Shown: in pieces, positions 1-15,621 of the stretch
Layout of the letters: the number at the start of each line of letters is the position of its first letter
Numbering within the stretch: position 1 is the stretch's first letter
Assembly: GCA_002794465.1 (NCBI GenBank)
Contig: MTSL01000033.1
Location: forward strand, 1 to 15,691
Direction of reading: 5' to 3'
From: Paramicrosporidium saccamoebae KSL3
Lineage: Eukaryota; Fungi; Cryptomycota
Length of the DNA: 15,691 nt
Translations under genes and position numbers: made by a program
The notes under the pieces: model-generated
What the model saw: the letters and a program-made list of their open reading frames with translations, nothing else
Database searches by the model: none
Told to the model about the DNA's origin: nothing

Positions 1-131
1 GTGGCGGAAGATCGCCAGTTGGTTCTTCAGAGGTCGGTGGTGGCGGAAGATCACCAGTTGGTTCTTCAGAGTCCGCTGGTAGTTCTGTCCCCTTGTCAGG
101 GGCTGGTGGTGGCGGGAAATCACCAGTTGGT
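1..131. repeat. 39-bp coding tandem repeat (13-aa unit SEEPTGDLPPPPT) plus a diverged third copy
   Basis: gtggcggaagatc(g/a)ccagttggttcttcagag occurs at 1-32 and 40-71; a related copy gtggcgggaaatcaccagttggt lies at 109-131. Confidence 0.9.
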
Positions 132-316
132 AGCAACTCCTCCTCTGAGCCCTGCGATTCACTCTCAGATAATAGTCCTGTCCCCTTGCCAAGGGGCGGT
201 GGTGGCACAGTGATCGTTGATGGCTCCCCAGAGGGCTTACCTTCAGCCCCCATGGCCGTCTCAAAGAGACTCACAGAGATCCACAACACGCAGATTGCAA
301 TCGCTGTCAACTTCAT
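1..316 (-). CDS. Secreted proline/acidic tandem-repeat protein, 5' part only (runs off the window); not in the ORF track
   Basis: Manual translation from ATG at 316-314 (A at -3) is open to base 1: MKLTAIAICVLWISVSLFETAMGAEGKPSGEPSTITVPPPPLGKGTGLLSESESQGSEEELLPTGDFPPPPAPDKGTELPADSEEPTGDLPPPPTSEEPTGDLPP... It has a signal-peptide-like N-terminus, and the repeat period (39 bp) is a multiple of 3. Confidence 0.78.
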   Translation of the reverse strand, partial: MKLTAIAICVLWISVSLFETAMGAEGKPSGEPSTITVPPPPLGKGTGLLSESESQGSEEELLPTGDFPPPPAPDKGTELPADSEEPTGDLPPPPTSEEPTGDLPP

Positions 317-337
317 TATTGCGTAGCCATACATCGT

Positions 338-405
338 CCACGCCCCCTATGTACGTGTGGAATGTGCACCAATCATCGCGTCCATGTGCCACGCGCCAAT
401 CCAAT
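338..405. promoter_or_regulatory. Candidate promoter of the Pro-rich secreted gene: GC box plus three CCAAT boxes
   Basis: CCACGCCCC (GGGGCGTGG on minus) at 338-346; CCAAT at 369-373, 396-400 and 401-405. All lie within 90 bp of the ATG at 316. Confidence 0.35.
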
Positions 406-583
406 CAAAAGAATCTCGCACGCTCATGGGCGAATCGTCTTTGTGATACCCCAGCCTATCAACTAAGCATTATACTGCTTTACAACTACGGCCTCACTAT
501 TACATCAATTACGCAATAAAGACATCTTTACTAAAGCCGCTAGATCATGATGAACACTCAATGATTAGAACTCGATCCACACT

Positions 584-3376: not shown

Positions 3377-3453
3377 GTTCGCGGTAAAGTAGTTTTGTTT
3401 AACCAAAGTAGCCGTTTTATGAGGTGTAATTACGAGTGCGACCGGTCAGTAAC

Positions 3454-3525
3454 GGCCGCTTGGTTTAGTGGTATAATTCTCGCTTCGGGTGCGAGAGGTC
3501 CCGAGTTCGATTCTCGGAGCGGCCC
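3454..3525 (+). tRNA. tRNA-Pro, anticodon CGG, 72 nt, intronless
   Basis: Acceptor stem GGCCGCT/AGCGGCC; D arm TGGTTTAGTGGTATAAT; anticodon arm CTCGC-TTCGGGT-GCGAG (CGG at 3486-3488); T arm CCGAG-TTCGATT-CTCGG. The sequence matches the typical eukaryotic tRNA-Pro pattern. Confidence 0.97.
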
Positions 3526-3528
3526 CTG

Positions 3529-3533
3529 TTTTT
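3529..3533 (+). terminator. RNA polymerase III terminator (T5) of the tRNA-Pro gene
   Basis: TTTTT starts 4 nt after the tRNA 3' end. Confidence 0.8.
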
Positions 3534-3561
3534 GACAATTTCCAATAAAAAAGAGATAAAT

Positions 3562-3569
3562 TTTGGCGG
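3562..3569 (+). promoter_or_regulatory. Candidate E2F site upstream of MCM2
   Basis: TTTGGCGG fits the E2F consensus TTTSSCGS and lies ~30 bp upstream of the proposed MCM2 ATG; a CCAAT occurs at 3542-3546. Confidence 0.5.
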
Positions 3570-3598
3570 CAATCCTTAAACCCTGACGAGTGAGTGAA

Positions 3599-6289
3599 AT
3601 GGTAAACGAGGTGGTGCTGGGTGTTTATTATGGAGTAGAGTGGTCGCAAGCGTGGAAATGCGATTGATAGCGACTCGGATGCTCCCCCAGAGCCCTCCCA
3701 GGATTTGTTCCCCCGTGGCAGTGGGGACTTGTATGAGAGTGACGAGGTGGAGGAGGAAGACTTGACAGACCCACGGGGAGGGGAACTGTATGCGAGTGGA
3801 GACCAACCGAGCGACTTTAACGAAGACAGTCTCCCCCCGCCCCTCTCCGATGAGGAGGAGATGGCGACGACTGCTGAAATGCCGTATTTTCCAGATATAA
3901 TTCATGCTGTAGGGCCACGAATGAATTGCCCACTTCCACTCCCAATCCGATCATTTACAATTATGTAGTGCCGCCGCTTGCAACTGCCTCTGAAATCTCT
4001 TATCCGGATTACTGCGACTGGGAGGGACTGGACAGCGCTTTGGGAATGCACCGTACTGCGCCCCCCGTCATGACGGATCTGCGATTGGAGGATGCGACAC
4101 TGACAGAGTTGGAGACGGCGGGTTATACACTGACAGAGATTGTCAGCGAGGCAAAATTCCGCCGACGCATTGCCCGCGATTATCAGCGCTTCCTGACGAC
4201 CTTTACCGACGAAGTGGGCCAATCAGTGTACAACTCGCGTATCCGAGCCATGTGCGCAGCCAACTCTGAGAGTTTGGAGGTGAGTTATTTGCATTTGGTG
4301 GAGACGAATGCCTTTTTGGCCAAACTGCTGGCCAATGTTCCACTTGCCACCTTGGCCATTTTCGACGAAGCCACGATGCGAATTGTATTGCGACTCTTTG
4401 AGGAATATGACAAGATTAAGAGCGAAATTCATGTACGGATCACTGACTTTCCCACCCTCGACAGTCTGCGTGATCTGCGCTATAATCATTTGGGCACTAT
4501 GATAAAGGTGTCGGGGGTAGTCACTCGCCGCAGCGGCGTCTTTCCACAACTGAAGCTCGTCAAATATGACTGTGGAAAGTGCGGAGCCATTCTGGGACCA
4601 TATGTACAAGACTTGAATCAGGAGATTCGCATCAGCGCCTGTTCTGAATGTGAAGCACGTGGGCCGTTTACTATTAATGCGGCACAGACAGTCTATCGGA
4701 ACTATCAGAAATTGACCCTGCAGGAGAGTCCTGGATCAGTGCCAGCTGGCCGTCTGCCTCGTCACAAAGAAGTCATTTTGCTGTGGGATCTTATTGACTG
4801 TGCCCGACCCGGAGAACTAGTTGAGGTTACGGGAATCTACCGAAACAACTTTTCCTACATGCTCAACAGCAAGAATGGCTTTCCCGTCTTTTCCACTGTC
4901 ATTGAGGCCAATTGGATTGGGAAGCGCGCGGATCAGTTTGCCGAGTTCCGCTTGACTGAAGAGGATCAGCGCGAGATTCGCCGATTGGCCGAGGATCCTC
5001 ACATTGGCCTTCGTATCATCCGCAGCATCGCTCCTTCCATTTATGGTCATCAGGACATTAAGACGGCCATTGCTCTGGCTCTGTTTGGCGGACAAGCCAA
5101 GAATGCCCAGGGAAAACATGTGATTCGTGGAGATATTAATGTGCTCCTCCTGGGTGATCCAGGAACGGCAAAGAGTCAGTTCCTAAAGTATGTAGAAAAG
5201 ACGGCACATCGGGCAGTGTACACTACTGGCCAAGGCGCCTCGGCGGTGGGTCTGACGGCCAGCGTGCGCAAGGATCCCCTTACCCGGGAATGGACACTGG
5301 AAGGAGGTGCACTGGTATTGGCAGATAAGGGAGTATGTCTTATTGACGAGTTTGACAAGATGAACGACTCGGATCGCACCAGCATCCACGAGGCCATGGA
5401 GCAGCAAAGCATTTCCATCAGCAAAGCAGGCATTGTCACCTCTCTTCAGGCGCGTTGTTCCATCATTGCGGCAGCCAATCCCACTCGCGGAAGATATAAC
5501 TCGGCCCTTCCCTTTTCGCAAAATGTCCATCTGACAGAGCCCATTTTGTCTCGTTTTGACATTCTGTGCGTAGTGAGAGACACGGTGGATGCAACTATTG
5601 ACGAGAGATTGGCGCGTTTTGTGGTGGGCAGTCACATTCGCAGCCATCCAGAAGCGGACACTATACTGGCAGACACTCTCCAGGCCGACACACTGATCCA
5701 GACGGTGGAGCCTTTGCCGCAGCCGCTGCTTAAAAAGTATTTGCTGTATGCCAAGTCGCGTATCCGTCCTGAGCTCAGTCAGATGGATGTGGACAAGATT
5801 GCGCGGTTGTATGCAGATCTCCGCCGTGAATCGCTGGCCACGGGTTCGATCCCCATCACTGTGCGTCACATTGAGTCTTTGGTGCGTATGTCTGAGGCAC
5901 ATGCGCGTATGCATCTGCGGGATCATGTGCGCAGCGACGACATTGATCTTGCCATCCGGGTAATGCTGTCCAGCTTCATTCAGTCCCAGAAATACTCTGT
6001 CATGACCCATCTGCGTCGTGCCTTTGGCAAATACATTACCCATCGCAAGGAACACGGCGAGCTGTTACTGTTTGCCCTCCAGGAACTTGTCAATGAGCGT
6101 ATTAAGTTGCTGTCTGTCCGCTACTCTGATGAGCTTCCTGGCGAAATTGAAATTGACATGCCCGATTTTGAAGCGCGGGCCAAAGAGCTAAATGTGTATG
6201 ATATCAAGCCTTTCCTCTCCAGTCGCTTCTTTACTGCCTCGGGATGTCGTGTTGATCTTGACCGTCGTGTCATTGTCAAGTCTCTTTAA
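3599..6289 (+). CDS. MCM2: DNA replication licensing factor MCM2, proposed join(3599..3601,3639..3883,3913..6289), 874 aa
   Basis: Zn finger CGKC...CSEC; QESPGSVPAGRLPRHKEVILL; Walker A GDPGTAKS; Walker B CLIDEFDKM; Arg finger SRFD; RRESLATGSIPITVRHIES. The acidic N-terminus is in a different frame (track ORF 3705..3968) and joins through two short GT..TAG introns. The core (~4100-6289) is certain; the 5' exon model is inferred. Confidence 0.95.
3602..3638 (+). other. Proposed 37-nt intron directly after the MCM2 start codon
   Basis: ATG|GTAAAC...GGAGTAG|AGT GGT CGC AAG CGT gives MSGRKRG...; removing it bypasses the TAG at 3636-3638 that closes the N-terminal frame. Confidence 0.6.
3884..3912 (+). 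other. Proposed 29-nt phase-2 intron of MCM2
   Basis: GTATTT...CTGTAG; a length of 2 mod 3 is exactly what joins the N-terminal frame to the main frame. A longer alternative acceptor at 4035 is also in frame. Confidence 0.55.
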
Positions 6290-8982: not shown

Positions 8983-9972
8983 ATGAAGTCGACACTATTG
9001 TTCTTCCTGTCGTTCTGTATGACTTATGCCGCCTCTACCTCGAAAAAAATCAAAAAGCTTCCTGGTAAAGAAGAATCAGAGAAGGCCTCTAGTGGGTTTG
9101 ATTCGATGGAGCTTGAGCTTAGCCTAGCCCGCCTGGGAAAGTTGTACGCGTCTGGGGCCTTTTGTGGGAGCTCAAGCAACTCTGTCTCCTCTCACTCTCA
9201 ATCCCCCTCTCGCTCTCGCTCTCGTTCCCCTTCTCCCTCTTACGACGTCTCATCCCTTCTCCTCTCTTCCTCCTCCTCCTCAGTTGATGCTCGTTCACCG
9301 CCCAGAAAGCGTCGTAAGACGGTCGATGAAAGAGATGCCGGTGGGTTTATCGTATACACGGACAATTCTAGCTTTGCTCCTTTGAGTTCCCAGGCGCTCC
9401 CACCGCTCCCAAAAGTAGTTGTGCCCAGCAAGGAAATTACTAACAAGTATACGCCGTTTTTGAAGGAGCTTATTGCCGGAGGAGACGACAGTCTGAAGGT
9501 TGTCTATGCGAGCGTTTCTGGCCTTAAGCATATTCAAAGCGAACTGAATGGAATTCCAGAATACATCAAGGCCGACCTTATTCTCAGTTCAATCCCCTTT
9601 AAAGGCCTCCCTCTTAAGGATTTGAAAAAGCTGGAGGCTGCTTTGAATGCTATTTCGGGAAAACGCATCTCTAAAAGGCTCCAAAAGATGCTAACTTCCG
9701 CAATGGTAGTCCTGAAAATTTTCAAAAAGAATTTCCCAAGGGGCCTCACTATTGCCGAGACAGAAGACTTGTTTACTCTATTAAAGTATACGTTGCTTAC
9801 CGCCTTTCCGTTCTACAGGCGCACCGATGCCATGGAATACCGAGATGGCGACTACCAAGTGATGACGGATTGGCCCGTCAAGTATACTGGGCGGGATCAT
9901 GAAATTCGGGCCTTTAGAGAATCACTCCGAGAAATGTATGGCGAGCAAGTGGGGAAAAACCAATCCAAATAA
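8983..9972 (+). CDS. Hypothetical secreted protein, 329 aa, with Ser-rich/RS tract and classical NLS
   Basis: Long ATG ORF in otherwise free sequence; N-terminus MKSTLLFFLSFCMTYAAS is signal-peptide-like; SPSRSRSRSPSPS at aa 74-86; PPRKRRKTV at aa 106-114. No family was recognised. Confidence 0.8.
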   Translation: MKSTLLFFLSFCMTYAASTSKKIKKLPGKEESEKASSGFDSMELELSLARLGKLYASGAFCGSSSNSVSSHSQSPSRSRSRSPSPSYDVSSLLLSSSSSSVDARSPPRKRRKTVDERDAGGFIVYTDNSSFAPLSSQALPPLPKVVVPSKEITNKYTPFLKELIAGGDDSLKVVYASVSGLKHIQSELNGIPEYIKADLILSSIPFKGLPLKDLKKLEAALNAISGKRISKRLQKMLTSAMVVLKIFKKNFPRGLTIAETEDLFTLLKYTLLTAFPFYRRTDAMEYRDGDYQVMTDWPVKYTGRDHEIRAFRESLREMYGEQVGKNQSK

Positions 9973-10384
9973 ATTAGACAGTTTAAGATGGGATAAATTG
10001 TAAATAGGTGGCTAATGCGGCGCACTAAGCAAACACGAAATCCAAATCTGCGAAATAGGTGACATTGTCCACGACTTGGATAAAGTGATTTCTGATGAGC
10101 TGGAACGCCATTTTCAAGACTGTAATTGAAGTAGAGGGTGACTCTTATCATCGCTCAAGTCGTTTTATAGGCTCTTCAATAAACCTGTAATGTAGAGGAT
10201 TGATTAGTTGGGTATTTGAGAATAATGTCATGGTCTGGAGAAGACATTGCGTGATAGAGTGGGTCGATTAGCCGGGTATTTTATGATTGTTACGTTATTT
10301 GTGAGACTATGAAAAAGTTATTGGATCAACAGCGAACGGGCTTCCGTACGACTTGGGTCGCGGTGATCTCCACTACGTGACACT

Positions 10385-10619
10385 TATACCCCGCTTTACA
10401 TGTGCTCTTATCAATGCCACTAGAGCCTGGCCTATCCGGCGACAGTGATCCAAGATTTGTCAATCAGTGCATCTCATCGATGGCGATGACTGCAGTCACT
10501 CTATAAATAGCCCGGAAATTTGCTAGAGTTGACCAACACGAGCACCCAGCGTCTTTAGTGGTGGCGTCCCATTATCCACGGGAATTGAAGCCGCTGTCCA
10601 TCATGGTGATGATTTATCG
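10385..10619 (+). pseudogene. Truncated relic of family X (paralogue of 12785..13453)
   Basis: 10551-10619 reads VFSGGVPLSTGIEAAVHHGDDLS vs AFDNSIPLSKRIEAMLPFDDELA in the intact copy. The start appears to be lost (ATA where copy B has ATG), with frameshifts and the 3' part missing. Confidence 0.6.
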
Positions 10620-10900
10620 TTACGTTGCCGTTGGGTGGGTCATGTTCGCCATGTCATGGTGGGCTAAGCTGGATCATTGATAGAAGGTAGTGCACTCACA
10701 ATTTTCCCCTCGGACCACGGTCGTTAAACCAGCCAGGTGAATCGCTGGACAAATCGGCACAGGAGCCAGTCTTTAATCATTGTGTATTTGAGTGAGCGGT
10801 TAGGGACGAATTCGACTTTGGGCGTGCTTGCAAGATGTGACAATGCAGCTTCCGCTGTAGTTGGCAAAACCTCAGTGTCTCCCTTGGTCTCTTAGATATA

Positions 10901-11005
10901 CTACTCGCATCGATCACGGTGTATCGGCATGAAGCCACATGTAGCAAGTTGATAAAGGCTTATGCATGGGTCTTTGTGTCGATACGCCGCGATCGATGCG
11001 AGTAG
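10901..11005 (+). ncRNA. Candidate long-stem hairpin RNA, copy A
   Basis: 10901-10943 pairs ungapped with 10963-11005: 43 positions, 35 Watson-Crick, 5 G-U, 3 mismatches, 19-nt loop. Transcription is not shown. Confidence 0.5.
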
Positions 11006-11010
11006 CACGG

Positions 11011-11629
11011 CTATATCAGTATAGTGACTATCAGCTCACTATTCAAATCTTTGGCCAATGCACCTACAATGATGGCGGCAATACAGTCCAGGAACACTTT
11101 AGCAAGCCTTTCGCGTCGGACAGGTATTATTTTGCATTCAGGGTGTAACCTGGGAAAGAGAGTGCTAGTACTCTGAAAGGTCTTCTTGATTAAAGACTGA
11201 TTGCTTGATCTAATCAAATGTGTACATGTAAACACGATCCACAAGGACGAGAAAGTCAACAACGCGGTTAGCGTCTTTGTAGTATCTCGGAAGTGCGGTG
11301 CGCCTAGGAAAAGCGATACCCAAATCCATGCCACATGAATCCTAAATTTTGGACCCATTACTTGGCGTATATGGATGGCGAAAACTTCAATAATTGCTAC
11401 GACCATCTTGCTAAAAACCGTGGACGGCCCAATGGATGGTACAAATGAACTCCCTACAATATCAGTCAATAACGGGAGATTTGCGTACCAATGACTTTAA
11501 GCAAGTGGAGCGAGATTAGTACGATATTTACGCTCGACATCAAGGCTGAGGCCCACTGTAACAGCGCTTTAGTAATGGGACATGGATTCCTACTAATTCA
11601 AAAGGTCGGCTGGCACGAAGCTAACGCAT
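11011..11629 (-). pseudogene. Decayed hydrophobic (membrane-like) gene Y, copy A
   Basis: Minus-strand frame GPKFRIHVAWIWVSLFLGAPHFRDTTK matches copy B GPKLRIYVAWIWLFLFTDAPHFRNTTK. There is a 1-nt deletion near 11480 and a stop right after the boundary ATG. Confidence 0.5.
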
Positions 11630-12739
11630 AAATTACCCAATCAAGAAGGGCGAATGACACGATAATGCACCACACTTTATTAAAAGAGCTAACAGGACGG
11701 CACGAGACTCGTGCATCTGATTAGCAGTAAACGCGTTCTCTTCCTAACTGGCCTGGTCGTGGCATTTTCCCCACTACGCGGCAGTAGCATCCTTACTACA
11801 CAACACCATTATTACACGACCGAACAACGTCATAATCATGTCGCTTATTTATTATGCTGTCATTTGCACGCATCTCGACAGAATCGTTCGATACAGATCA
11901 AAAGTTTGATGGCGTGGAATCTCGCGCTCTATTTCGTGTATTTCTGCAAAGAGGATTCCCCCACTGGACCTCACTGCTACAGCCACCGTAATCATTCTCG
12001 ACTATCACTCGGATTATAGGGTACACCCACCCAATGATCACATAAATTAGAGCGATTTGATTCGAGAATAATATCGAAACGATAAAGCAACAGAATACTC
12101 CCCAAACCTCCGACAAGACTCTTTTCCCAGCGGTAGCTATTTTCGTTTTCCGGTAAAGGGCCTTCCTTATGTGTTTAGAGCTTGCCAAAAGTTTGCCATC
12201 TGTGAATTTCAGTATGGCGAACCGCGCGGAATTTAAGAATTGCCCATAAGATGTGCGGCACCACAAAACAGGTAGACCTCCGCTCTAGTCCGCGTCCTTT
12301 TGCTGAACCGACTAGAATGGCCATCTAAAAGATGGCAATGGAAGATAACGCAAGCGTGGCATTATGAGGTACATTGCTTATGCGCGTTGTGATGTGCTCA
12401 GAATGACACATCAGATTATATACACACACCAATAGTGGTTAGTCCCCTTTGAGGACACAAATAAAACGCTCTATTTGCGCCTGCTAATCCCTTGGCGGTG
12501 CGGCTTAATCGGCTCATGATAGCTTGAAAGCAATGGTATATCGGCGGAGAAACTTATTTAATGGCATCCCACCTGCTCCGTGGTGATAGTAGGCTCCTGC
12601 GACACCACACTACGCGGCGTTACGGACCAAAGATTCCAGTAAAGGGTTTTTACTATTAGTATAATGGTGTGTCAATAAATTACTCACCTCGGCAGCGCTG
12701 TCGGGTTGGTTAGGGCGATCGGCGTATATGCGGTGCGGA

Positions 12740-12747
12740 TATAAATA
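12740..12747 (+). promoter_or_regulatory. Candidate TATA box of the family X gene
   Basis: TATAAATA lies 38-45 bp upstream of the ATG at 12785. Confidence 0.4.
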
Positions 12748-12784
12748 GAATTACGAGTCTTACCGGGGGTCACCCGAGTCGAGC

Positions 12785-13453
12785 ATGGTGAAGGCAGGCC
12801 GAGCTCCCATAATACCCACTCTTCGTCGAGCCAAAGCCAAGGTTGAGTCTCGGTATCCCAATGCGTTTGATAATAGTATCCCACTATCAAAAAGAATTGA
12901 AGCCATGTTGCCCTTTGACGACGAGTTGGCAGAACTGTTTCAGCTTATCCACGTCTTTCTGGCTACCGGCTATGGTGACTGGCGCAAATTTCAGGAAAAG
13001 AACATTCCCCTATACAATATCCACGATGGGTTCGTCATGATATATGACGGGAAAATCGCAGAGTGCAAGGCGCTGATTAATAGGAAACTTCTCCCCCCTT
13101 CTAAGCCTGTTTCTTGGACAGGGCTCACGTTTTCAAAGATGAGAAGCATGAATAAGCTTATACCCGACCATCTTTTAACATCGGGGTCACTCGCCAGGGT
13201 GTTTTTTCAGGTTGCTAATTTGCAGCCAGAAGGTTGTCCCGAATTCTGCCAAACATACTATTGCCTGTCCGTTTATGAAAAGCTTACAAGAGATAGGATG
13301 GTTCCCTCTGAAAAGCTTGACCGAGGACTGCAACATGCTTGGAAATTATTTGCCACCCAGTCTTTGTATTTCACGCTTTACAACAAATTGGTGACCAAGA
13401 CTCCCGAGGAATTTGTAGGGTTTTTGGATATTGTCGTGGGACAAGCACCCTGA
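12785..13453 (+). CDS. Hypothetical protein, 222 aa, intact member of local family X
   Basis: ATG in good context (agcATGG). Protein-level conservation with the copy at 13940..14769 (IPDHLLTSGS/IPRHLLVTGS, YYCLSVYEK identical, TPEEFVGF/TPEEFVRF) supports a real coding history. No known family was recognised. Confidence 0.75.
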   Translation: MVKAGRAPIIPTLRRAKAKVESRYPNAFDNSIPLSKRIEAMLPFDDELAELFQLIHVFLATGYGDWRKFQEKNIPLYNIHDGFVMIYDGKIAECKALINRKLLPPSKPVSWTGLTFSKMRSMNKLIPDHLLTSGSLARVFFQVANLQPEGCPEFCQTYYCLSVYEKLTRDRMVPSEKLDRGLQHAWKLFATQSLYFTLYNKLVTKTPEEFVGFLDIVVGQAP

Positions 13454-13939
13454 GGCGCACTCGTAGGCAAGAGCTCTTGGCTATTTGGAGAGTCTCTTTT
13501 GTAGTGCTGCATATTGATCAGTATTTTTCCCCAGTCAGCTGATCCATCACACAACCGCCCACTTGCTAACCGAGAAAATGGCTATAGGCGATTAACAGAT
13601 CGGCATTGCAGGACTTGACAGAAGATTCCGTCGCAAATTCTCGCCCATCACCTGATACGAGCGTGTAGGCAGAACTTTGGTTTATTAAAGTGTCGTGTTA
13701 ATTGGAAGTTAAATGTATTAAAGGACGTAGCATCTTTATAAACATCTATTCTCAATGACAGATAGGTATCGTGGGATAGCTATCAGGCGCCGGAACACCG
13801 ATCACGAACGGGCAGCTCTATACCTCGCTTTATGTTATCGCCGACGCTACTAGGGTCTGGCCTATTCGGGACAAAGATCCAAGATCTACCAATCAGCACA
13901 TCTCATCGATGGGGGATAATCGCAGTCATCCTATCATCA

Positions 13940-14769
13940 ATGGCCTCAAAATTCGCTGGGGTTAGCTAGCACGAACCCCTCGACTAAGCCAAGACCCGAG
14001 TCGAAGCTCAAGTCTCGGATGCCTTTAACGGTAATGTTCCGTTACCCGCAAGGATTGATGCTATTGCGCGTTGTGGTAATGATATATTCCAACTGTTCCA
14101 GTACATCGAAATCTTTTCGGTCATCGGCCACGATAACTGGCAGGAATTCAGGACTGGCTATCTCCCGCAGAAACTCTCGATAAAGGATTCTTGCCGATGC
14201 TTGCTAACAGATTGGATGAACACAAGGCGTTTATAACCGAGAAGCTCCATCCCATCATTGTTGAACCACCTCACTTACCTCAATTAGCCTTTTTGGAAAT
14301 GAGAGCGATGAACGGACACATACCCCGTCATCTTTTGGTCACAGGATCACGTGCCAAGATATTCTGCCGTATCTCTAACTTGATGCCGGAGGATCATTCT
14401 GAGCTTTGCGAGTCCTACTATTGCCTATCTGTATATGAGAAATTTATAAGAGGCATGGTATCCACCGAGGAGCTTGAGCAAAGGTTAGAGCAGGTATGGA
14501 ACTCTTTAATATCCAAAAACCTGCACAGCGTATTTTATAGCGAACTGCTATGTGGAACTCCCGAGGAGTTTGTTAGGTTTGCAGATGGCCTCATAACCCA
14601 AGTACCGGGACACGTTGTATGTGACGACTCCCAAGATCCGTTCAGGCTTTTAACATACTTCTGCTCTTACCCGATCTCATTGTGCCGGTCTGTGTCTGCA
14701 AGACAGTTTGAGGAAGGGAAGGGCATAGGATTCGGCTGTTTGCGGGCGACTAATGAATGTTGGGGATGA
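13940..14769 (+). pseudogene. Disrupted family X paralogue
   Basis: ATG at 13940, then TAG and TAA (13985) within 16 codons. AKTRVEAQVSDAFNGNVPLPARIDAI aligns with AKAKVESRYPNAFDNSIPLSKRIEAM. A 1-nt frameshift near 14171-14181 leads into track ORF 14191..14769 (TTG start). Confidence 0.7.
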
Positions 14770-14858
14770 ATTCGACTTTAGTCGTGCTTGCAAGGTGCGA
14801 CAATGCAGCTTCCGCTGTAGTTGGCAAAGTCTCGGCGTTTCCTCATAATTTTTTAGAT

Positions 14859-14969
14859 GTGCTACTCGTATCGATCACGGCGTATCGGCACGAAGCCACA
14901 TATAATGCGTTAATGATATCTTATGTATGGGTCTTTGTGTCAATACGCCGCGATCGATGCGAGTAGCAC
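14859..14969 (+). ncRNA. Candidate long-stem hairpin RNA, copy B
   Basis: 14859-14904 pairs ungapped with 14924-14969: 46 positions, 38 Watson-Crick, 4 G-U, 4 mismatches, 19-nt loop. Transcription is not shown. Confidence 0.5.
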
Positions 14970-15621
14970 GGTTACCAGGATAATGTTTATCGGCTTACTA
15001 CTGAAATCTTTGGTAAATGCTACTGCAACAATGACAGCGATACAGTCCAAGAAACCTTAGCAAGCCCTGAGCAGGTATTATTTTGCATTCATGGTGTAAC
15101 TTGGGAAAGAGAGTGCCGATGTTTTAAAAAGTTTCCTTAAACCAAGATCAGTTACTTGATCTAATCAGGTGTGCGCATATAAGCACGATACACAAGGGCG
15201 ATAAATTAATAATGCAGTCGGGGCTTTTGTAGTATTTCGAAAGTGGGGAGCATCAGTAAAAAGAAATAACCAGATCCATGCTACGTAGATTCTCAGTTTT
15301 GGACCCGGTATATGGCAAACATGGATGGCAAGAACTATGAGAATCGCCACAGCCATTTTCTAGGAATCGTGGTCGGTACAACGAACGGCACAGATGAACC
15401 CACTACAATGCAGATTAATAGCAAAAAGTTTTGCGTACCAACAGCTTTAAGCAGATGTAGTAAGATCAATACAGTGTTCACGTTCGACATGAAGGAGGGC
15501 TGAGACTCACTGCGGCAATGCTTTAGTAATGGAGCATTAATTCCGAATTCAAAAAGTCGGCCGACACGGCAATGGTGCGTGATTTCTTGATTAAGAGTCG
15601 GCTGGCACGAAGTCAACGCAT
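14940..15621 (-). pseudogene. Decayed hydrophobic gene Y, copy B
   Basis: Track ORFs 15335..15616 and 15165..15356 are successive frameshifted pieces that align with copy A; internal stops occur near 15100-15150. Confidence 0.5.

Follow-up and report, generated by a model that had tools for sequence, protein, structure and literature searches.

The analysis of the complete contig MTSL01000033.1 (15,691 bp, assembly GCA_002794465.1) of Paramicrosporidium saccamoebae KSL3, which constitutes the window studied here, revealed at its left end an open reading frame (ORF) on the minus strand that, judging from its sequence, probably represents the 5' part of a lineage-specific gene that the public annotation has placed on the wrong strand. 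We are largely confident that this ORF is a real gene, and its product is probably a secreted, acidic, disordered and proline-rich repeat protein, as suggested by its composition and by structure prediction. A structural or surface role in the spore apparatus, as a protein resembling polar tube protein 1 (PTP1), a spore-wall repeat protein or a coat protein, is the best-supported mechanism in our analysis, at a confidence that stays somewhat below even. We do not assign the protein to the PTP1 family, and the term PTP1-like rests on composition only.

The minus-strand ORF reads from position 316 to base 1 of the window through 105 codons without a stop (MKLTAIAICVLWISVSLFETAMGAEGKPSGEPSTITVPPPPLGKGTGLLSESESQGSEEELLPTGDFPPPPAPDKGTELPADSEEPTGDLPPPPTSEEPTGDLPP) and runs off the contig. 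Base 1 is the physical end of the contig and falls inside a 39-nt (13-codon) repeat, and the assembly holds no sequence to its left. A second in-frame ATG is placed at 334–332 (MYGYAIMKL...), with a TAG stop just upstream of it, so that the stop-free run comprises 105–111 codons depending on whether the ATG at 316–314 (MKLTAIAICVLWISVSLFETAMG) or the one at 334–332 is taken as the start. The ORF start and the signal-peptide-like segment occupy positions 248–334 of the minus strand and are followed by a visible mature part of 82 residues (2–247), in which acidic, proline-rich and degenerate repeats are arranged around PTGD-[F/L]-PPPP and no stop is found before the contig end. The intergenic stretch that separates the ORF start from the stop of the coatomer-beta gene at 584 (335–583, minus strand) would contain the promoter, and a TATAAT is located ~140 nt upstream of the ATG at 334, a weak indication that consists of a match to the consensus only. 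The public gene model of this locus, on the other hand, covers positions 3–326 of the plus strand and encodes a Gly-rich protein of 107 amino acids (GGRSPVGSSEVGGGG...) without a start codon in the contig. The first-pass annotation of this DNA had described the ORF as missing from the gene track: the minus-strand ORF indeed has no stop, but the locus is modelled publicly on the opposite strand.

Retranslation and a motif scan returned the proline motifs at the very positions that the first-pass annotation had assigned to them. The first and most diverged unit, VPPPP (residues 37–41; 194–208, minus strand), does not match the FP4 motif. It is followed by DFPPPPAPD (residues 66–74; 95–121), whose D codon is placed at 121–119 and whose FP4 core, FPPPP, comprises residues 67–71 (118–104), and by DLPPPPTSEE (residues 89–98; 23–52), with the FP4 core LPPPP at residues 90–94 (49–35). 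A third copy of the motif, DLPP..., is cut by the contig end (2–13).

The N-terminus of the predicted protein displays the n/h/c layout of a signal peptide, with the residues MK followed by 16 uncharged hydrophobic residues and by ETAMG|AE, where small residues occupy positions −3 and −1 and cleavage is predicted after A-M-G at residue 23 (window 250–248). This assignment was made by a heuristic test of hydrophobicity and layout, in which the reference set consisted of 9,648 ATG-ORFs (50 codons or more) taken from shuffled copies of the window. The 12-residue hydrophobicity of the N-terminus was equalled by 0.2% of these random ORFs (p ~0.002), and the 16-residue uncharged run by 0.07% of them. 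In the single-sequence AlphaFold2 prediction residues 3–23 form a confident helix (predicted local distance difference test, pLDDT, 81–85), and the rest of the chain is coil without secondary structure (pLDDT 53–69), being predicted as disordered. The hydrophobicity relative to random ORFs and the predicted helix agree with the signal peptide proposed in the first-pass annotation, which looks like a cleavable one. The visible mature part is rich in Pro (25.6%), Glu (14.6%) and Gly (12.2%), followed by Ser, Thr and Leu (9.8% each), has an isoelectric point (pI) of 4.05, and contains a single Phe and no Trp, Arg or Cys.

A closer inspection of the repeats showed that they are degenerate at first (VPPPP-LGKGTGLLSESESQGSEEELLPTGD, then FPPPP-APDKGTELPADSEEPTGD) and later give way to a near-perfect 13-mer (LPPPP-TSEEPTGD); conservation is highest in the core PTGD-[F/L]-PPP. 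At the DNA level, two tandem 39-nt (13-codon) units (EEPTGDLPPPPTS; 1–78, without an assigned strand) that are 90% identical are placed at the contig end, and the contig terminates 1.7 units into this tandem repeat. The spacings of the DNA repeat families are 39, 69 and 93 nt, every one of them a multiple of 3, which favours coding but neither strand in particular. The FP4-type instances are copies of a single duplicated DNA unit. The genome was assembled with Velvet from 80-nt reads at k=53, and we infer that the repeat array continues past base 1 and broke this assembly. An intron starting at AAG|GTAAGC, a look-alike of a 5' splice site placed just after the signal-peptide part (235–243, minus strand), was considered and rejected: the downstream sequence is in frame and already carries a diverged repeat unit (VPPPPLGKGTGL versus FPPPPAPDKGTEL), and splicing to the best 3' site would run the frame into a stop.

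The choice of strand is suggested by several comparisons. With three housekeeping genes of this contig (coatomer beta, MCM and ATP synthase beta) as the training set, a codon model gave a log-likelihood of −11.7 for the minus frame versus −25.0 for the annotated plus frame, that is, ~13 bits in favour of the minus strand. The annotated ORF at 3–326, with Gly/Ser-rich repeats of the type GGGG[R/K]SPVGS, could nevertheless be the true gene and the minus frame its antisense shadow. This frame is fully open and present as a model in the public record, an AATAAA is found ~180 nt downstream of its stop, and Gly/Ser-rich repeat spore wall proteins such as EcSWP1 are known (PMC10381864). However, besides the worse codon score, the plus-strand ORF lacks a start codon in the contig, and its C-terminal tail is featureless, whereas the reverse reading of that segment yields an ATG and a textbook signal peptide (p ~0.002). 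Neither did the protein search with the Gly-rich frame return homologues. The annotation pipeline ran with keep_preds=1, a setting that keeps unsupported ab initio predictions, and the AATAAA is not consistently present after the other genes of the contig, which makes the comparison of poly(A) signals, like that of start contexts, uninformative. We regard it as unlikely that the plus-strand model is the true gene, and it was judged to be an antisense shadow of the minus-strand ORF.

Three features of codon usage and substitution speak against a coding minus frame. The synonymous codon score of the ORF is −19, as compared with +16.6 ± 6.8 when the reference genes are read in their true frames; 13 of the 21 Pro codons of the ORF are CCA, the one that these genes use least for Pro; and only 5 of the 18 differences between repeat units fall at third codon positions, with no enrichment. 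No frame shows a typical synonymous codon usage, which is uninformative as a test of strand. The substitutions between units, with 3 synonymous and 10 non-synonymous changes in each open frame, fit the plus-strand gene equally well and cannot separate the strands, because the two open frames have wobble positions in common. The same codon usage, which resembles that of antisense or non-coding sequence, and the same lack of third-position bias would be expected if the locus were no gene at all but a non-coding, GC-rich minisatellite at the contig end that is open by chance in several frames. Three of the six frames are in fact open or nearly so, and no homologues were found. Against a minisatellite, the 5' part of the ORF is unique, non-repeat sequence that encodes an ATG and a signal peptide, and every unit length is a multiple of 3; this possibility is very unlikely in our view, and the reading as a minus-strand gene was retained.

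The minus-strand protein is an orphan. No relative of the proline-rich frame was found among 5.8 billion clustered proteins, and an exhaustive phmmer search of 1.84 billion representatives gave no accepted relative. One phmmer match (P0002, E 1.2e-4), a protein of 1231 amino acids with about ten YVPPPPGGLWV repeats, was rejected as a low-complexity coincidence, as only VPPPPLG was matched. Sequence searches of Pfam and the PDB returned no match for the protein. In the metagenomes of the Joint Genome Institute (JGI), six peptide patterns gave 534 pattern matches, none of which was confirmed by tblastn. Queries with the proline-rich and the Gly-rich frames for a continuation on another contig returned only the window's own model, and the flanking proteins of the locus are found on no other contig in the indexed collections.

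The first-pass annotation had supposed that the DNA came from a eukaryotic parasite and held that a free-living source would tell against its proposal; P. saccamoebae is a spore-forming, polar-filament-bearing obligate intracellular parasite of amoebae. More precisely, it is an obligate intranuclear parasite of Saccamoeba, a rozellid whose spores carry a polar filament and which is sister to Microsporidia (PMC5701793, PMC6282948). In spite of this obvious polar filament, the hidden Markov models of the genome authors detected no polar filament proteins in the predicted proteome, a failure that they ascribed to fast evolution. The proteome searched held the Gly-rich antisense model and not the minus-strand ORF, which was missing from it because the locus had been modelled on the other strand.

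PTP1 is tabulated as an acidic, proline-rich protein with tandem repeats, O-mannosylation and a signal peptide (PMC10381864 Table 2; PMC7040029), and for two species the absence of Trp and Arg is noted as well (PMC10381864 Table 2); PTP1 is linked to PTP2 by disulfide bridges (PMC10381864). All the compositional descriptors of PTP1 except the cysteines are matched by the minus-strand protein (pI 4.05, 25.6% Pro, 39-nt units, 20% Ser+Thr, no Trp or Arg). The protein thus resembles the microsporidian EcPTP1, EiPTP1 and EhPTP1 in its predicted signal peptide, acidic pI, high Pro content, tandem repeats, abundant Ser/Thr available for O-mannosylation and absence of Trp and Arg, and its source organism, which belongs to the lineage that is sister to Microsporidia, likewise has a polar filament. 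It differs from them in the lack of sequence similarity, of visible cysteines and of a PTP2-like gene on the visible side, and in having its Pro residues in strict PPPP runs, in a comparison that rests on 105 residues. The structural, proline-rich alternative that the first-pass annotation had mentioned in second place fits the data at least as well as its preferred proposal. A further point of reference is NbSWP16, a proline-rich tandem-repeat spore wall protein of Nosema bombycis (PMC7040029, PMC10381864). With it and other acidic repeat surface proteins of parasites the minus-strand protein has in common lineage-specific tandem proline-rich repeats, predicted secretion and an origin in a spore-forming intracellular parasite. 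NbSWP16, however, is basic (pI 8.42) and carries a heparin-binding motif (PMC10381864), and no sequence similarity links the two proteins.

Several observations weigh against the structural interpretation. The 82 visible mature residues contain no Cys, the remaining protein being beyond the contig end, whereas PTP1 proteins are cysteine-containing and disulfide-linked. The genes for PTP1 and PTP2 (Lys-rich, ~30 kDa) are adjacent in microsporidia, and here the neighbour on the visible side is coatomer beta and not a PTP2-like gene, with the left side again beyond the contig end. The protein and Pfam searches showed no similarity to PTP1, nor to anything else, although PTP1 evolves too fast for a similarity test to decide. 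Finally, the part conserved among the repeats is precisely PTGD-[F/L]-PPPP, and a selected ligand motif would look alike. A neighbouring ORF at 8983–9972 was considered as a PTP2-like partner and rejected, as it has no Pfam match and lies 8.6 kb away.

According to the structural interpretation, the minus-strand gene (334/316 to 1) would encode an acidic, disordered, proline-rich protein behind a cleavable signal peptide, and in its mature part degenerate tandem repeats would give way to near-perfect ones of 13 residues (EEPTGD-L-PPPP-TS); the assembly would have broken within the repeat array, leaving the C-terminus beyond the contig end. The protein would enter the secretory pathway, where its Ser/Thr-Pro-rich repeats would probably be O-mannosylated, and would act beyond the plasma membrane of the parasite, serving the spore apparatus (the polar filament, the spore wall or the coat) as an extended structural or surface element of the polyproline-II type. 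It would thus be a compositional analogue of microsporidian polar tube protein 1, and the DFPPPP and DLPPPP strings would be a by-product of repeat composition rather than selected host ligands.

These strings are the basis of the reading that the first-pass annotation had favoured, an ActA-like mimicry in which the secreted protein would reach the host cytoplasm or nucleoplasm and its FP4 motifs would bind the EVH1 domain of the amoeba Ena/VASP, recruiting the actin-elongation machinery to the parasite itself or to a site that it defines. We consider such mimicry unlikely, and the capture of the host Ena/VASP tetramer by a tandem, acidic-flanked FP4 array, as a eukaryote-on-eukaryote convergence with Listeria ActA, a little less likely still. 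The motif recognized by the EVH1 domain of Ena/VASP is [FWYL]PxΦP, made stronger by acidic flanks (PMC8789275), whose role in binding is also stated elsewhere (PMC4165403). The motifs themselves are as first described, with two full matches to the FP4 core (FPPPP and LPPPP) plus the LPP truncated by the contig end, at spacings of 23 and 13 residues, flanked by D at position −1 in all copies and by D or EE within 3–4 residues downstream, and placed in a predicted disordered region; EEPTGDLPPPPTSEE and LLPTGDFPPPPAPDK are the candidate EVH1-ligand peptides. The array probably continues, and the VASP tetramer gains avidity from clustered motifs (PMC4165403). LPPPP is a functional EVH1 ligand in fly Abi and is used by PCARE, the tightest known ligand of ENAH (PMC8789275, PMC4165403). 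The best conserved part of the repeats coincides with the motif, as already mentioned.

The distribution of the reader and the life cycle of the parasite also favour an encounter of this kind. In a published survey that sampled amoebozoans and four fungi, the amoebozoans have Ena/VASP and the fungi are reported to have lost it (PMC3748353), so that the parasite is probably without a reader of its own while the host clade has one. The trophic stages (meronts) of P. saccamoebae are unwalled and directly touch the host contents (PMC6282948); a secreted protein could therefore meet host proteins.

On the other side, at least one [DE][FLWY]PPPP was present in 9.7% of shuffles in which the PPPP runs were kept fixed and the other residues permuted, so the occurrence of the motif is not beyond what composition gives. 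The nominal chance of two matches in these shuffles, 0.3%, is not applicable, since all instances stem from a single duplicated unit and are not independent. The human proteome contains 4,994 FP4 regular-expression matches, most of them non-functional (PMC8789275), which makes a match of this type weak evidence, and most of the copies carry Leu, a weaker anchor than Phe (PMC4165403). Passage through the endoplasmic reticulum would likely bring O-glycosylation of the Thr/Ser residues beside the motif, and the parasite develops within the nucleus, away from the cortical cytoplasm, which is the site of Ena/VASP action. Within the 82 residues of the visible mature part there is no WH2, basic actin-binding or acidic-Trp Arp2/3-activating segment.

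With Listeria ActA and the host FP4 proteins (zyxin, vinculin, lamellipodin and Abi) the minus-strand protein shares repeated [F/L]PPPP with acidic residues on both sides and predicted disorder, and, with ActA, its origin in an intracellular parasite and an export signal, which is here predicted. It differs from these proteins in being non-homologous to them (the searches of 5.8 billion clusters and 1.84 billion representatives gave no significant match to anything, ActA included, and the likeness is at the motif level only), in having mostly Leu for Phe and in its eukaryotic secretory signal; with respect to ActA, no Arp2/3-activating N-terminal module can be seen, the parasite lives in the nucleus, and EVH1 binding is only predicted from the motif. 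The ActA-like motifs are real, yet nothing in the sequence lifts actin hijacking above the base rate of the motif. If FP4 capture took place, it might aid the travel of the sporoplasm to the nucleus or its entry into it, and would represent the first host-cytoskeleton effector described for the rozellid (microsporidia) lineage, while the motif reading, if true, would place the protein among the rare cases in which a eukaryotic parasite uses short-linear-motif mimicry against a protist host.

Proline motifs of this type could also be read by host proteins other than Ena/VASP, the protein being then a host-directed disordered effector for SH3 domains, profilin, WASP-type WH1 domains or the EVH1 domain of PPP4R3/SMEK. 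At the regular-expression level the SH3 and PP4 EVH1 readers fit about as well as Ena/VASP: PPAPDK conforms to the class II SH3 pattern PxxPx[KR], and FPPP to FxxP. The four-proline runs are short for profilin, which counts against it as a reader. The EVH1 domain of PPP4R3/SMEK, a nuclear regulatory subunit of PP4, reads FxxP and MxPP, and these motif classes are documented in ELM. The intranuclear life of the parasite makes nuclear readers easier to reach than cortical VASP, and disorder together with acidity is typical of carriers of short linear motifs. Nevertheless, each of the alternative patterns occurs only once, the evidence is all at the regular-expression level, the motif scan found neither PPxY nor PPLP WW motifs, and the protein has no nuclear localisation signal or basic residues. 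A role of this sort is rather unlikely, and the structural interpretation remains the best supported.

The rest of the contig presented several additional features. A tRNA-Pro gene (anticodon CGG; ARAGORN, Rfam 58 bits) is placed at 3454–3526 of the plus strand, between the coatomer beta and MCM genes. The tRNA is overlapped by the database model of MCM (3419–6289, 851 amino acids), which starts upstream, so that the first exon of this model is probably mis-modelled; the long MCM ORF runs from 3926. The orphan ORF at 8983–9972 (plus strand) encodes 329 amino acids with a signal-peptide-like N-terminus (MKSTLLFFLSFCMTYAAS), which is lost in the database model, as this starts at the second ATG (9019, 317 amino acids). 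Its product has a pI of 9.64, 15% Ser, an SRSRSRSPSPS stretch and a PRKRRK patch similar to a nuclear localisation signal, and from these sequence features it is a candidate for a secreted, nucleus-directed protein of this intranuclear parasite.

Two tandem orphan paralogues (12785–13453 and 13988–14769, both on the plus strand) share 43% identity over 134 amino acids (E 7e-36) and have no Pfam match. The second one is split across two frames near 14140–14190, by a frameshift or a short intron, and the single database model of 421 amino acids that starts at 12785 may fuse both. The segments 10385–11617 and 13819–15568 constitute a diverged segmental duplication, ~75% identical along 826 nt and with a further piece of 160 nt. 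Its first copy is placed within a stretch of 2.8 kb (9973–12784) without a database gene model, which is unusual in a genome reported as 76% gene space. In both copies there are antisense ORFs whose hydrophobic beginnings resemble each other (MVVAIIEVFAIH... and MAVAILIVLAIH...). An inverted repeat of 41 nt (10901–10941 and 10965–11005), 83% complementary and with a 23-nt loop, is located within the duplicated segment and has a partner copy at 14927–14966.

No polar-filament, spore-wall or host-directed protein is known from Paramicrosporidium. The practical lesson of the present analysis is a modest one: the gene model at the end of this contig should be re-stranded, and long reads are needed across the repeat. 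For the biology of the lineage, an acidic, proline-rich repeat protein that is free of Trp and Arg and carries a signal peptide is the profile to seek for an early analogue of PTP1.

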